Assembly (NCBI GenBank): GCA_020137815.1
Contig: CM035352.1
Coordinates: forward strand, 620,001 to 684,000
Direction of reading: 5' to 3'
Length of the DNA stretch: 64,000 bases
Source: Hormiphora californensis
Lineage: Eukaryota > Animalia > Ctenophora
Below the pieces are notes generated by a model that searched no databases, was not told where the DNA came from, and worked only from the letters and a program-made list of their open reading frames with translations. Position 1 is the first letter of the stretch. Each line of letters starts with the position of its first letter. Shown here piece by piece: positions 3,046 through 30,221 of this stretch. The position numbers and the translations under genes were made by a program.

Positions 3046-3588
3046 GATGAATTTTCAATTTGCCGGTTTTTACTCTGAATTTTGGCTCAAAAGATAACCA
3101 TCGAGAGTTTTCAGGTGGCGATTAGGGATTTTCATTCTGTAAGGTTGCCTGTGGGAAACTACATAGCATAGCTAAGTCCCATTCTGGCATTAGTTTATCT
3201 ATTTTTGCTTTCTTTTTAAAATTTAAAATTTAAAATTTAAAAATTTGTTTCGCGGAAAATTATTTTTCCGGAAATTTAAAAATTTAGTTAAGATAGGCCG
3301 CGCGCAAAAATATACGTCATGATAAATGTAACACGCCAAATAAAAACTTTTAACGATGCATAATTAACGCGCGGTGAAATGTCAAGCATGAAGCAAGCTC
3401 AAATATGAAAATTCGGCCAGCGTTAAAATCTGGGCCAGCGTTAAAATCTGGGTGTTTTGGGAGTGCTGACAAACGGTTTTTTAGGGTTAGGGCTAAAGTA
3501 GGGTTAGGGTTACACGGCGTGCCTGGTGAAATTTTAACACGACCTAGCATGCGACGGGAAACCACCACTTGTACGTGGTAGCTGAGGG

Positions 3589-4825
3589 TCAAACTTTTCA
3601 ACACTACAGGGTGTCCCACTGTCTTTGCATCACCTTGGATCAGGACCGGGCTCCATTAAACTAACCAAAACTCATCGAAAAATTGGTCAAAACGGTTCTA
3701 ACAAAAACCAGTGTTCTAGAGAATTGTCTGGCGAACATTTTGGTGGCAAGATTGACGTTCCAAGTCTTACCAATCGTCAGATATATCGTCGTAAAGTCAA
3801 AAGTACGTGTTCATGAAATCCGACCGGAGTTCACGTTTTGAAAAATTCACAAATGCAAAGTTGCTCGGATCACATTGCATCCCTCATAAGAGTTGTAGGA
3901 AATTGTCTGGCGGTCATTTTGGTACCCGGGTTTTTGTCCTAGCTCAATGTTTAGAGTGTCTTATGACTGTCTAAAGACGGAATTCAACCAGCATTTTTGA
4001 GGGGATCACGTGTCATCAACAAATGGGTAAAATGATTTGAAATTTACAAGAGCTTCATTGGAATCGTCTAAGGTTCATTTTGATACCATGATTTTTTCCA
4101 TAGCTTTATGTTTTAGTTGCGTTATGACTGTAGAAACATGAAAATTGTTCTATGCTGAGTCTTAGTTGGTATCGGCTCACAACCCCTAATTAGGTGGCTC
4201 GGTGTCGTGTGTAATCCCATGATAATCAGCACATATCGTCTCAATTTCATCTAGACACTTGACAGGGTTGTTATGACGATTTGGCAAGGCCCCTGTAAAT
4301 GTGTAGGATACGCGAGTGGTCTATCTCAACCCTATCATGCACTAACATGTTATTCAAGCAGCAATGAGCTTCATAGCAGGGCAAAATGCAATGCGATACC
4401 TGAGACCACTTTTGGAAAAATTCCAGTTCTGACAGTCATAAGACACTCTAAACATTGAGCTAGGACACAAACCCGGGTACCAAAATGACCGCCAGACAAT
4501 TTCCTACAACTCTTATGAGGGATGCAATGTGATCCGAGCAACTTTGCATTTGTGAATTTTTCAAAACGTGAACCCCGGTCGGATTTCATGAACACGTACT
4601 TTTGACTTTACGACGATATATCTGACGATTGGTAAGACTTGGAACGTCAATCTTGCCACCAAAATGTTCGCCAGAAAATTCTCTAGAACGCTGGTTTTTG
4701 TTAGAACCATTTTGACTAATTTTTCGATGAGTTTTGGTTAGTTTAATGGAGCCCGGTCATCACCCAAAATCACAGGTGATGCAAAGACAGTGGGACACCC
4801 TGTACTTTAAACAAATTAATTTGAG
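3589..4825 (+). other. Spliced-leader (SL) exon sequence, split by a Tc1/mariner insertion (3589-3606 + 4805-4825)
   Basis: Joining across the TA TSD gives TCAAACTTTTCAACACTACTTTAAACAAATTAATTTGAG, matching my recollection of the ctenophore SL. It is followed by CAGG, not a GT donor, so it looks like a trans-spliced product rather than an SL RNA gene. Confidence 0.8.
3607..4802. mobile_element. Tc1/mariner-type non-autonomous element (~1.2 kb) with ~365-bp TIRs
   Basis: TA|CAGGGTGTCCCACTGTC...GACAGTGGGACACCCTG|TA; long inverted arms at ~3607-3972 and ~4432-4802. Confidence 0.9.
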
Positions 4826-4881
4826 CAGGAAGATGAATCCGATGTAACAGCCCCGAAGGGCAGAAAAACGAAACGTTGATA

Positions 4882-5838
4882 ATGTCGGAAGCGAAGTACG
4901 AGGGCGATAACCCTATGATAAAACGATTAGAAGAGACGGTGGATGACTTTGTTTCTGAAGTTTACCTGTTGAATTCGGACAACACGACGAGCATCACACC
5001 AGATGAGTTTACTCAATGTTATAGATCGATTCAAGCTGCACCCGATTCAATGTTAACCAACGACAGCTTAGCTTCGCCTAGCAAGCACTGGGGTTCGTAC
5101 TTTAGACATTGTCTCAAGGACCGAACTACGAGTGAAATAATCGAGGCTACTTCGCGTATTTTTCTCTCCAGTATGAAACTTGCCCGAGCAACAATGAACA
5201 ATTTTGAAACGGTTATCAGTGTGGAAAACCTCGAGAAACAGCTGCGTGAATGTAAAGAAGAACTTGACCGCCATCGGGTTAACGTAATCGAGCTTCAGCA
5301 AACGGTTATCAACCACCAGAAGCAACAACTCAGTACAGTGACAGCATCGGTGCAGAAGGTGAAAGCCTACTCTACTGTGCTAGCACAGAATTGTGCTGCA
5401 ACCTCCCCCAAAGTGGGAAAACCACTACCAGTGAATCATCCTACTCCCGTCCAACAGCCCGGAAGAGAGAAGAACATGGTTGTGTTTGGTCTCCCAGAAA
5501 CAACCGATAGAGTAGCTAAAACTACTTTAGACGAACTTTTTGAGGAATTAAATGAGAAACCGAAAGTGACTACGATGAAACGCATCGGCGAAAGAAATGA
5601 GAAGCGCCCTAGACCGCTCTTAGTATCCCTGGAGAAGAGAGCGACTCTCCTCGCACTCCTCAGAAAGGCACGAAACCTCAAAGACTCCAAACAGTTTTCG
5701 GCTGTTTATCTCTCTCCGGATCTTACGCCCTCTGAACTGAAAGAGCAAAAAGCTCTAAGGTCCACTTTGAAGCGGATACGATCAGAAGATCCTGACGGCT
5801 GCTACTTCATCCGTAATAATCTTATCCAAGTGGGATAG
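4882..5838 (+). CDS. LINE ORF1p-like protein (coiled coil + RRM/CTD; CR1/L2 type)
   Basis: Intact ~318-aa ORF with a coiled coil (LEKQLRECKEEL) and REKNMVVFGLPE, RPRPLLVSL and VYLSPDLTPSE motifs typical of LINE ORF1. It is followed by an ORF2-start-like stub (SCLYTNCVS..KL) and a (TTA)n tail at ~5968-5985. Confidence 0.8.
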   Translation: MSEAKYEGDNPMIKRLEETVDDFVSEVYLLNSDNTTSITPDEFTQCYRSIQAAPDSMLTNDSLASPSKHWGSYFRHCLKDRTTSEIIEATSRIFLSSMKLARATMNNFETVISVENLEKQLRECKEELDRHRVNVIELQQTVINHQKQQLSTVTASVQKVKAYSTVLAQNCAATSPKVGKPLPVNHPTPVQQPGREKNMVVFGLPETTDRVAKTTLDELFEELNEKPKVTTMKRIGERNEKRPRPLLVSLEKRATLLALLRKARNLKDSKQFSAVYLSPDLTPSELKEQKALRSTLKRIRSEDPDGCYFIRNNLIQVG

Positions 5839-5988
5839 TTCCCCACTAACTCACCGTTATCAGAGAACCGTGCTAGGAGCAGGCAGTCTACTGCAGTCCC
5901 TTTCAAATTAAGGAAAACGAGTTGTCTGTATACAAACTGTGTCAGTGCGGGATATAAACTGTCATTTTTATTATTATTATTATTACTA

Positions 5989-7142
5989 CGGTGCGGGAAA
6001 AAACATTCCATTCCCTAAAATCTTTTTTTTTACTTTTATTTGATTTGGGTCAAAATTGGCTATATCAAACGTGGTCCCGAAAAATCCATAATGACTTAGC
6101 ACACGAAATATGTCACCCCCACCTATTTTTGCACGTAGAATCGATTGCCGTTGAAGTCGAATCTCTAAAATGACTGTAAAATGGTCAAAAGTTGATTTTT
6201 TACCATTTTTTGGAGGTTTTTGGCCCCTAAACCATTGAAAACGTTGAGATAGGAATTTGAAACTAGTGCCAATCGTTAAAATGGTCATTTTTCTACCAAG
6301 AACCAAGTTTTCGTGTATATCCGATTTATGGTTAGAATTGGGCAAATTGTTGAAATCTGCCAACTAGGAGAACCGTACCTTGATTTTTTCCTTTTTTATG
6401 TTTTGGTATTTTTGATAAACTTCTGATTGAAATGGCCAGTCGGGACCATGCTTAAGTTGTTTATGGGATAAATTTCGACTAAAATCCAAGATTTCATACC
6501 AATCCAATAACAGATCGTTGAATTATAGAAAATTTAGGTAGGCAAAACGGTCAAAATATCAACTTTTTTTGCTTATTTTGACCGTTTTGCCTACCTAAAT
6601 TTTCTATAATTCAACGATCTGTTATTGGATTGGTATGAAATCTTGGATTTTAGTCGAAATTTATCCCATAAACAACTTAAGCATGGTCCCGACTGGCCAT
6701 TTCAATCAGAAGTTTATCAAAAATACCAAAACATAAAAAAGGAAAAAATCAAGGTACGGTTCTCCTAGTTGGCAGATTTCAACAATTTGCCCAATTCTAA
6801 CCATAAATCGGATATACACGAAAACTTGGTTCTTGGTAGAAAAATGACCATTTTAACGATTGGCACTAGTTTCAAATTCCTATCTCAACGTTTTCAATGG
6901 TTTAGGGGCCAAAAACCTCCAAAAAATGGTAAAAAATCAACTTTTGACCATTTTACAGTCATTTTAGAGATTCGACTTCAACGGCAATCGATTCTACGTG
7001 CAAAAATAGGTGGGGGTGACATATTTCGTGTGCTAAGTCATTATGGCTTTTTCGTGATCACGTTTAATGTAGCCAATTTTGACCCAAATCAAATAAAAGT
7101 AAAAAAAAGATTTTAGGGAATGGAATGTTTTTTCCCGCACCG
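5989..7142. mobile_element. Near-perfect palindromic (foldback) element, 1154 bp, TA TSD
   Basis: TA|CGGTGCGGGAAAAAACATTCC...GGAATGTTTTTTCCCGCACCG|TA; arms ~570 bp with a short loop near 6560-6575. The mirrored ORFs 5986-6363(-) and 6769-7116(+) confirm the symmetry. Confidence 0.9.
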
Positions 7143-7950
7143 TAGTGCCATTCTGTAGACCCTCAGCTACCACGTACAAGTGGTGGTTTCCCGTCGCATG
7201 CTAGGTCGTGTTAAAATTTCACCAGGCACGCCGTGGTTAGGGTTGGGGTTTGGGTTGGGGTTAGGCCTTGACATTCCCTACCAGATAAACTTTGAATCAG
7301 CCAAAACGGTTGAGTAGTTTGGCGGTTAGAGCCATTTTAGTGAATCAACTTTTTTTGGCAGCGCGCACCTGTAAACAGGCCTCCAAACACCCAGATCGTA
7401 ACGGCGCCCTAAAATCTGGGTGTTTGGTGAGTGCTGTCAAACGGTTTTTTAGGGTTAGGGCTAAAGTGGGGTCAGGGTTAGGGCTGGGGTTTGGGTTGGG
7501 GTTTGGCCTTGACATTTCCTACCAGATAAACTTTGAATTAGCCAAAACGGTTGAGTGGTTTAGCGGTTAGAGCCATTTTAGTGAATCAACTTTTTTGGCA
7601 GCGTGCACCTGTAAACAGGCCACCAAACACCCAGATCGTAACGGCGCCCTGAAAATTCTTGATATATGTTCTTTTTTATCTTTCCCGGTTTTCTAGTCCG
7701 CCTCGGACTGTCTGAGTCGCGATAGGCGAAGGCCGAAGAGCGAGGCCTCTATGGACAATGCCCAGTGATTATTTCATCGGCTCTGTCCATAAGTTTGTCC
7801 GTTTCGAATTCTATTTTTTTCTTCAAATTTTAATTTTTATATCACCTCAAAATTCTCAATTAGTATGAGTGGAAAATCAAAAGCAAATACATAACATCAG
7901 TATGGATCTCAGAGGCCTAACTTGGGCTTAGTAATGAATACAACTCTCCA

Positions 7951-9424: not shown

Positions 9425-30221
<20,797 letters not shown>

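Follow-up and report, generated by a model that had tools for sequence, protein, structure and literature searches.

A spliced-leader-headed, ORF1-only retroposon nested within a palindromic DNA transposon of the ctenophore Hormiphora californensis

We analyzed a 64,000-nt stretch of the genome of the ctenophore Hormiphora californensis (assembly GCA_020137815.1, contig CM035352.1, positions 620,001 to 684,000 of the forward strand; the whole stretch is hereafter called the window), in which a 1.2-kb element that begins with the spliced leader (SL) of the host lies between the terminal inverted repeats (TIRs) of a DNA transposon, a miniature inverted-repeat transposable element (MITE). Judged by its sequence, the 1.2-kb unit is a non-autonomous retroposon without long terminal repeats (non-LTR), of the long interspersed nuclear element (LINE) type, mobile on its own. 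It carries a single open reading frame (ORF) for a protein that is predicted to fold like L1 ORF1p, and comparison of its copies shows a 5' head that was, in all probability, added repeatedly by host trans-splicing. The composite is a nested insertion that happened once and removed 12 bp of its target, because the junction between TIR and leader is single-copy and because the 1.2-kb unit moves by itself. The reading that we favor as a whole, and that we hold to be highly probable, combines three nested and unrelated transpositions with the life cycle of an SL-dependent 'half-LINE'. An earlier note on this DNA, made from the letters alone, had seen behind the leader-like 39-mer the reverse transcription of an SL-trans-spliced retroelement RNA, and this agrees with the copies that we found with one or the other of two leaders (SL-A or SL-B) at one junction. 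All of the copy counts given below come from exact or similarity searches of one H. californensis assembly (110.69 Mb, 45 contigs).

Results

Two spliced leaders and their genes

According to the H. californensis genome paper, 56% of Iso-Seq reads carry a trans-spliced leader, which is found at 718 places in the genome; the text of that paper describes a single leader with copies that are more than 90% identical and leaves open the nature of the 718 copies (PMC8527503). The 39-mer of the window locus is identical to nt 6-44 of the published H. californensis leader (PMC8527503), and its identification as the ctenophore leader, which the earlier note had made, is therefore correct. The window head, which is of the SL-A type, is without the first 6-7 nt of the leader, and similar truncations of a few nt at the 5' end are seen in other copies. 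A 34-mer of SL-A finds 613 dispersed genomic matches and none in the control. At 30 sampled leader loci, many different bodies follow the leader, with ORFs of the ORF1-like, PHD or CCCH type, while SL RNA genes account for none of the 30. The SL-A RNA genes themselves amount to about 15 copies with GAG/GTA (here and below, a slash marks a splice junction), and the five that we inspected have in common a promoter block, the GTAAGCTGA donor (GAG/GTAAG) and a CTTTTGG Sm-like site. These genes (L063-L067) lie in one cluster (G000:C13:3181665-3195360) and in three divergent pairs (C5:6431354/6431971, C9:4528298/4528838 and C11:221870/222487).

The second leader, SL-B, the end of which reads ...AACGTAAAACTATTTATTGAG (also given as ...CATCAACTACAACGTAAAACTATTTATTGAG), has one SL RNA gene of its own (G000:C13:2741080-2741430, L082), in which initiator, donor and Sm-like site are as in the SL-A genes; no fewer than 160 further copies of SL-B are scattered through the genome, where they precede many bodies (heads in L073-L081). 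Most of the roughly 770 SL copies dispersed in the genome seem to be the heads of retroelements and not SL genes.

Some leader-headed elements occur as inverted pairs, head to head, the two members overlapping in the near-palindromic start of the leader, GTTTCAAAC (L042, L045, L057 and L081, the last at C15:3420-5807), which suggests microhomology joining of two complementary DNA (cDNA) ends. The sub-threshold microRNA-like Rfam hits are due to such head-to-head leader hairpins. A hammerhead ribozyme, considered on account of a CUGAUGA-stem-GAAAC arrangement just past the leader (L033, L034, L042, L045, L052, L055 and L057), was rejected, as no Rfam hammerhead match was obtained.

Repeated acquisition of the leader

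Among the 32 full-length copies of the retroposon that have the exact body start, 23 carry SL-A and nine carry SL-B at the same junction, and none is leaderless. The leader of the element stops precisely where the SL RNA genes have their splice donor. In a maximum-likelihood tree of 23 copies, both of the well-supported subfamilies, a young one and an old one, hold both head types; at least three changes of head type are forced by well-supported branches and six are obtained by parsimony, with the SL-B rows L086 and L089 on long branches where placement is unsure. Alternative junctions, SL/GAAGATG and SL/ATGAATCC, are found in other copies three or seven bases further in, and these shifted junctions (CAG/ and AAG/) always follow an AG acceptor. 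With two leaders at one junction, mixed on the tree, the leader behaves as a part acquired independently of the body. It is because of this shared junction and this mixture, together with the shift of junctions to positions after AG and the lack of any leaderless full-length copy, that we read the head as having been repeatedly added by trans-splicing.

The alternative that survives best, although we consider it improbable, is that a leader was captured once and has since been inherited like any other 5' sequence, transcription beginning at it or close by. Such inheritance would fit a DNA-encoded leader in all 32 full-length copies, and the continuity from leader to ORF in RNA contigs (see below) is what a DNA-encoded head would yield as well. 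However, it leaves unexplained why SL-A and SL-B should stand at the same junction and be mixed in the young as well as in the old subfamily, with the changes counted above, why junctions shifted to the next AGs occur and why both leaders are found on many unrelated families. Under repeated trans-splicing, we suggest that SL-headed copies themselves may serve as sources, the encoded leader being removed and replaced.

A family of ORF1-only retroposons

Four sampled copies match the 1.2-kb unit from end to end, at 99.8, 99.1, 95 and 88% identity, between unrelated flanks. A genome search with the body as the query (window 4826-5988, 1163 nt) gave at least 40 retroposon copies scored among 142 candidates, many of them about 100% identical, and some copies begin at positions 75-361 of the query, as 5' truncation predicts. 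The 3' tail, the 5'-truncated copies, the lack of terminal repeats and the dispersal to unrelated sites are hallmarks of the target-primed reverse transcription (TPRT) type. As for autonomy, the sole ORF encodes 318 amino acids (aa) and no reverse transcriptase (RT), and the region downstream of it is a 3' untranslated region (UTR).

At least five divergent ORF1-only families have the same 1.2-kb design, namely the window type and those of L051/L054/L061, L040/L050/L062, L038/L058 and L048. In each, a leader is followed by a short 5'UTR with GCCC-loop-GGGCAG, an ORF1-type gene, a short 3'UTR and a microsatellite tail that is specific to the family. The GCCC-loop-GGGCAG hairpin motif lies 20-40 nt past the leader (window 4850-4863, L038, L040, L048, L050, L053, L058 and L060/L068) and is common to the ORF1-only families and one full-length LINE.

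The predicted ORF1p-like protein

The ORF is intact, and its description as LINE ORF1-like in the earlier note is borne out by the predicted fold. A structure model built on an alignment of eight paralogs contains a long helix at residues 83-174 (coiled coil) and an RRM-like beta-alpha-beta-beta-alpha-beta unit at 198-279. The top 11 matches of the model in the Protein Data Bank (PDB) are human LINE-1 ORF1p, including the trimer, a construct of the RRM and C-terminal domain, and the central domain; the central domain of L1 ORF1p (2W7A) compares with the model at a template-modelling (TM) score of 0.69 and a root-mean-square deviation of 3.4. The ORF is thereby predicted to encode an RNA-binding protein that folds like L1 ORF1p, with a coiled coil, an RRM and a C-terminal domain. 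Between subfamilies of the ORF, the ratio of non-synonymous to synonymous substitution rates (dN/dS) is 0.15-0.29, indicating purifying selection. Homologs are found among the proteins of Pleurobrachia bachei, and many more on database contigs of 1.1-1.9 kb.

A 3' end in common with an RT-bearing LINE

Over its final 130 nt, which take in about 105 nt of the 124-nt 3'UTR along with the tail, the element matches, at 76% identity, the terminal part of the 3'UTR in a LINE that has an RT (L070); in that LINE the shared segment lies about 1 kb past the ORF2 stop. What had been taken in the earlier note for an ORF2 stub is this 3'UTR module. In the L070 LINE, a 945-aa ORF2 contains an RT domain, the (TTA)n tail is the same and the terminal motif agrees at 17 of 18 bases; the terminal 18-mer of the 3'UTR has 79 genomic matches, as against one in the control. 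From these similarities, L070 is the best candidate for the RT donor. Two full-length leader-headed LINEs are also present. The first (L068) has a 410-aa ORF1 and a 971-aa ORF2 that includes an endonuclease and an RT domain, and its tail is (TTTGA)n; the second is L069. BLASTP and profile comparison show no similarity between the ORF1 of L068 and the window ORF, and no homolog of the window ORF1 was found in L068 or L069 by tblastn.

The shared 3' end bears on a second alternative, which we rate about as improbable as a leader captured once, or a shade more so. It holds that the ORF1-only units are passively mobilized, processed retrocopies of a host gene family of ORF1 descent, and no transposon lineage at all. 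An mRNA-like structure of leader, short UTRs and one ORF is what one would expect of such retrocopies, and the purifying selection, the homologs in Pleurobrachia bachei and the presence of the RNA in oligo-dT libraries point the same way. The tails, however, are family-specific microsatellites and not poly(A), the 3' end has a recognition-type module in common with RT-bearing LINEs, and the same 1.2-kb design is held by at least five divergent families. Moreover, copies are numerous and near-identical, with some 5'-truncated, and no intron-bearing parent was seen in a search that was not exhaustive. We therefore prefer a retroposon lineage of LINE type to a host gene family.

Transcripts

The body of a copy is covered, at 99% or more, by contigs from four marine RNA libraries, two of which are oligo-dT libraries. 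One contig of 493 nt runs from the leader into the ORF, and contigs over the flanks of the retroposon are nearly absent in those libraries.

As a separate observation, the ctenophore leader is found at very high depth in the seawater metatranscriptomes of several studies (L043:1494-1546), joined to many downstream sequences, and could therefore mark ctenophore mRNA in environmental samples.

Layout of the locus and the order of nesting

The features of the locus are collected in Table 1. The perfect 78-bp TIRs and the GTTA target-site duplication (TSD) on both sides are as described in the earlier note, as is the (TTA)n tail. The TIR has 374 candidate matches in the genome, the best 40 of which were scored and are all 100% identical, and the matches are mostly inverted pairs about 1341 bp apart. 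We aligned 11 canonical copies of 1340-1342 bp, each with its own 4-bp TSD. They consist of the TIR, then TACAGAATGGCG, then a palindromic body starting CTACGGTGCGGG; the palindrome runs the whole length of the element, at an arm-to-arm identity of 98.8%. Across 12 MITE copies, 12 different 4-bp TSDs are found. The window copy retains positions 1-78 and 91-1341 of the canonical 1341-bp element, with 95% identity over 91-1341, and the insert (3591-5985) sits between positions 78 and 91, where 12 bp of the left arm (TACAGAATGGCG) were replaced by the retroposon. When the nested MITE is subtracted, the insert comes to 1.2 kb and comprises nt 7/8-43 of the leader, the 56-nt 5'UTR, the 318-aa ORF, the 124-nt 3'UTR and (TTA)n.

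Table 1 Features of the nested locus, in window positions.
Feature	Positions	Strand	Evidence
Target-site duplication GTTA, left copy, of the palindromic MITE	3509-3512		Single GTTA at paralogous empty site
78-bp left TIR (MITE positions 1-78), begins CAC	3513-3590	+	100% complementary to 7158-7235
SL-A leader, first part, AAACTTTTCAACACTA	3591-3606	+	Matches published leader and SL RNA genes
Nested 1196-bp MITE with CAGGGTG...CACCCTG ends	3607-4802		TA duplication 3605-3606 / 4803-4804
SL-A leader, second part, CTTTAAACAAATTAATTTGAG	4805-4825	+	End is exact splice-donor position of SL RNA genes
56-nt 5'UTR, begins CAG/GAAG/ATG (alternative acceptor AGs)	4826-4881	+	Hairpin motif GCCCCGAAGGGCAG at 4850-4863
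Intact 318-aa ORF, L1-ORF1p-like: coiled coil, RRM, small C-terminal domain	4882-5838	+	Predicted model; dN/dS 0.15-0.29
124-nt 3'UTR module, last bases GTGCGGGATATAAACTGT (5945-5962)	5839-5962	+	76% over 130 nt to 3'UTR end of L070 LINE
Retroposon microsatellite tail CATTTT(TAT/TTA)n, presumed start of TPRT	5963-5985	+	Tail type common to all sampled copies and L070 LINE
Native body of the palindromic MITE, positions 91-1263	5986-7157		Inverted arms of 563 nt at 97%; aligns to canonical element
78-bp right TIR, final bases GTG	7158-7235	-	Perfect complement of left TIR
Target-site duplication GTTA, right copy	7236-7239		Paralogous empty site in adjacent repeat unit

The earlier note had removed two TA-flanked insertions from the locus, and their removal does leave 1369 bp. 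The first of them (3607-4802) is an insertion indeed, with a TA duplication and membership in a multicopy family, and it divides the SL head into two parts. The family is about 1203 bp long and has 325 candidate genomic matches in inverted pairs about 1203 bp apart; its TA target suggests Tc1/mariner, as a candidate only. The second (5989-7142) is the MITE's own body, because the 11 canonical copies have the same body between the same TIRs, and the palindrome CTACGGTG...CACCGTAG includes the supposed TA flanks. The retrocopy, which was thought to fill almost the entire interior of the TIR element, thus replaces only 12 bp of a 1341-bp MITE, and the proposal of a one-off insertion into a tiny palindromic MITE holds for the one-off event and for the palindrome, but not for the size.

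Chapaev elements have 5'-CAC...GTG-3' termini and a TSD of 3-4 bp (PMC4079192), in agreement with the earlier note. The host MITE resembles Chapaev/CMC non-autonomous transposons in its invariant CAC...GTG ends and 4-bp TSD, and differs from them in being a near-perfect palindrome over its 1341 bp (PMC4079192). By its termini and TSD it would be classed as a Chapaev-like non-autonomous DNA transposon. The unpaired TIR hits that we inspected are mutated or interrupted MITE copies only; no search aimed at transposases was made, and no partner was identified.

Three events account for the locus. The 1341-bp Chapaev-like palindromic transposon entered a TTAGGG-like tandem repeat and duplicated GTTA; a paralogous empty site with a single GTTA is present at 7462-7495, in the adjoining unit of the tandem repeat beside the MITE. 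The 1.2-kb half-LINE then entered the left arm of this MITE, probably by TPRT, and a TA-targeting MITE entered the leader of the retroposon last.

The composite could instead be a Pack-type element, in which the TIR pair moves the SL-ORF1 cassette as cut-and-paste cargo, a possibility that was raised in the earlier note and for which the perfect 78-bp TIRs and the clean 4-bp TSD around the whole structure would speak. For this assembly we regard it as refuted. The TIR-SL junction occurs once in 110.7 Mb in a genome-wide search, the other 16 sampled TIR-bearing copies have the palindromic body and no SL-ORF1 cassette, and at least 40 copies of the cassette, which is mobile on its own, are without TIRs. 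The check that the note itself had proposed, for several TIR-SL-ORF1-TIR copies with different TSDs, found one copy only, and it is because the junction is single-copy and the other sampled TIR pairs are without insert, the outcome that the note had named as deciding against a mobile system, that the Pack-type idea fails. The pairing of TIRs and retrocopy is accidental, an ordinary nested insertion of no special significance.

A roughly 240-bp tandem repeat, in which degenerate tracts resembling TTAGGG occur, borders the MITE (window 3400-3512 and 7236-7660), and similar sequence adjoins several other transposon copies elsewhere in the genome (L070:1870-1925, and 3' flanks in L047 and L083). 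Elsewhere in the window, a long (CT)n microsatellite of 181 copies lies at 11041-11396. An Rfam scan of the full 64-kb window gave no match.

Discussion

The results can be brought together in a cycle that depends on the host spliced leader. The retroposon RNA would be trans-spliced to the host SL, which would supply the cap and fix the 5' end with no need for a promoter in the element itself, after which the spliced RNA would be translated into the L1-ORF1p-like RNA-binding protein. An RT supplied in trans by a related autonomous LINE would copy the RNA from the (TTA)n/3'UTR module, and a full-length cDNA would write the leader into DNA. Daughter copies with an SL head would be transcribed by read-through, and the 3' splice acceptor would be the AG at the end of the DNA-encoded leader, or one of the AGs that follow, such that the head is replaced in each cycle.

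Several points weigh against this reading and should be considered when referring to it. A Pfam search of the 318-aa ORF returned noise only and no recognized domain, and the structure model, with a predicted local distance difference test (pLDDT) score of 70.5, is of moderate confidence. There is no clear TSD for the retroposon, the window copy having the 12-bp target deletion instead. A master copy without SL could sit outside the exact-match set or outside the assembly. The RNA evidence consists of assembled environmental contigs, from which neither transcript starts nor unspliced precursors can be read, and one of the four libraries may be DNA. Lastly, no full-length autonomous LINE with a homologous ORF1 was found, and just one copy of the L070-type LINE reaches the ORF2 start and is itself 5'-truncated beside another repeat. 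As this is the only long copy of a candidate partner, and as a full-length LINE with homologous ORF1 is missing, we infer the supply of RT in trans rather than observe it.

The system that comes closest in design is that of the mammalian HAL1 ('half-L1') elements, reportedly described by Bao and Jurka in 2010. HAL1 is a non-autonomous LINE derivative with only an ORF1p-type gene and the LINE 3' end, presumably borrowing ORF2p in trans. The ctenophore element, likewise, has an ORF1p-type gene and a 3' end in common with an autonomous LINE of the same genome. It is unlike HAL1 in that its 5' end is a trans-spliced leader and not an internal promoter, its tail is a microsatellite and not poly(A), its design is found in at least five divergent families under purifying selection and no link could be made between its ORF1 and that of any full-length LINE examined.

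Physical association with SL sequence is also known from NeSL-1, SLACS and CZAR, which are LINEs that insert into SL RNA genes. The ctenophore elements are similar to these in that LINE-type sequence is joined to SL sequence, and unlike them in being dispersed at unrelated sites, with the leader exon up to the donor and no SL intron or promoter around it. Both such SL-gene targeting and the RT template switching that produces U6-L1 chimeras are known ways to join small-RNA or SL sequence to LINEs and might be invoked for the ctenophore head, but neither is credible here, where the leader stops at the donor position without the GTAAGCTGA... intron part of the SL RNA, where junctions lie without exception after AG and where the upstream flanks of about 50 heads are unrelated to the promoter block or intron of the SL genes.

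Our literature search found no account of SL-headed LINEs in animals, the sole analogue being the SL-tagged retrogenes of dinoflagellates (PMC6050394, PMC5585692, PMC12014239). There, as in the ctenophore, a DNA-encoded 5' leader marks a reverse-transcribed trans-spliced RNA; the ctenophore case differs in that the host is an animal and the RNAs that bear the tag are those of retrotransposons, whether LINEs or derivatives with ORF1 alone. Furthermore, stacked relic leaders were not seen in the roughly 50 ctenophore heads inspected, and one junction is shared by two different leaders. The guild to which the retroposon belongs, that of LINE derivatives headed by a leader, is a notable one and has apparently not been described before. 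Among non-autonomous retroposons that code for a protein, those with ORF1 only, kept in several divergent families by purifying selection, are a rare case.

A broader proposal, which we put forward as possible rather than probable, is that a whole guild of promoter-less retroposons, comprising full-length LINEs and at least five half-LINE families, uses SL trans-splicing in this ctenophore to make its 5' ends. The encoded leader, with its final AG, would be the guild's own acceptor, at which any read-through RNA would be trimmed and re-capped by SL-A or SL-B into an RNA of unit length, fit for translation and retrotransposition, and ORF1 and ORF2 may reside on separate SL-headed retroposons with one 3' recognition module. 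If true, most of the 718 published 'leader loci' would be retroelement heads and not SL genes. The present data point to only about 16 SL RNA genes among the genomic leader copies and to retroelement heads as the bulk of the remainder, which matters for gene models that place Iso-Seq reads at the 'nearest leader locus'.

As the two leaders act as natural barcodes, the renewal of the leader is directly testable. The expression of LINE-like elements after loss of the 5' end is a long-standing problem, for which internal promoters and 5' ribozymes are the known solutions; to these, a DNA-encoded leader that renews itself through trans-splicing would add a third.

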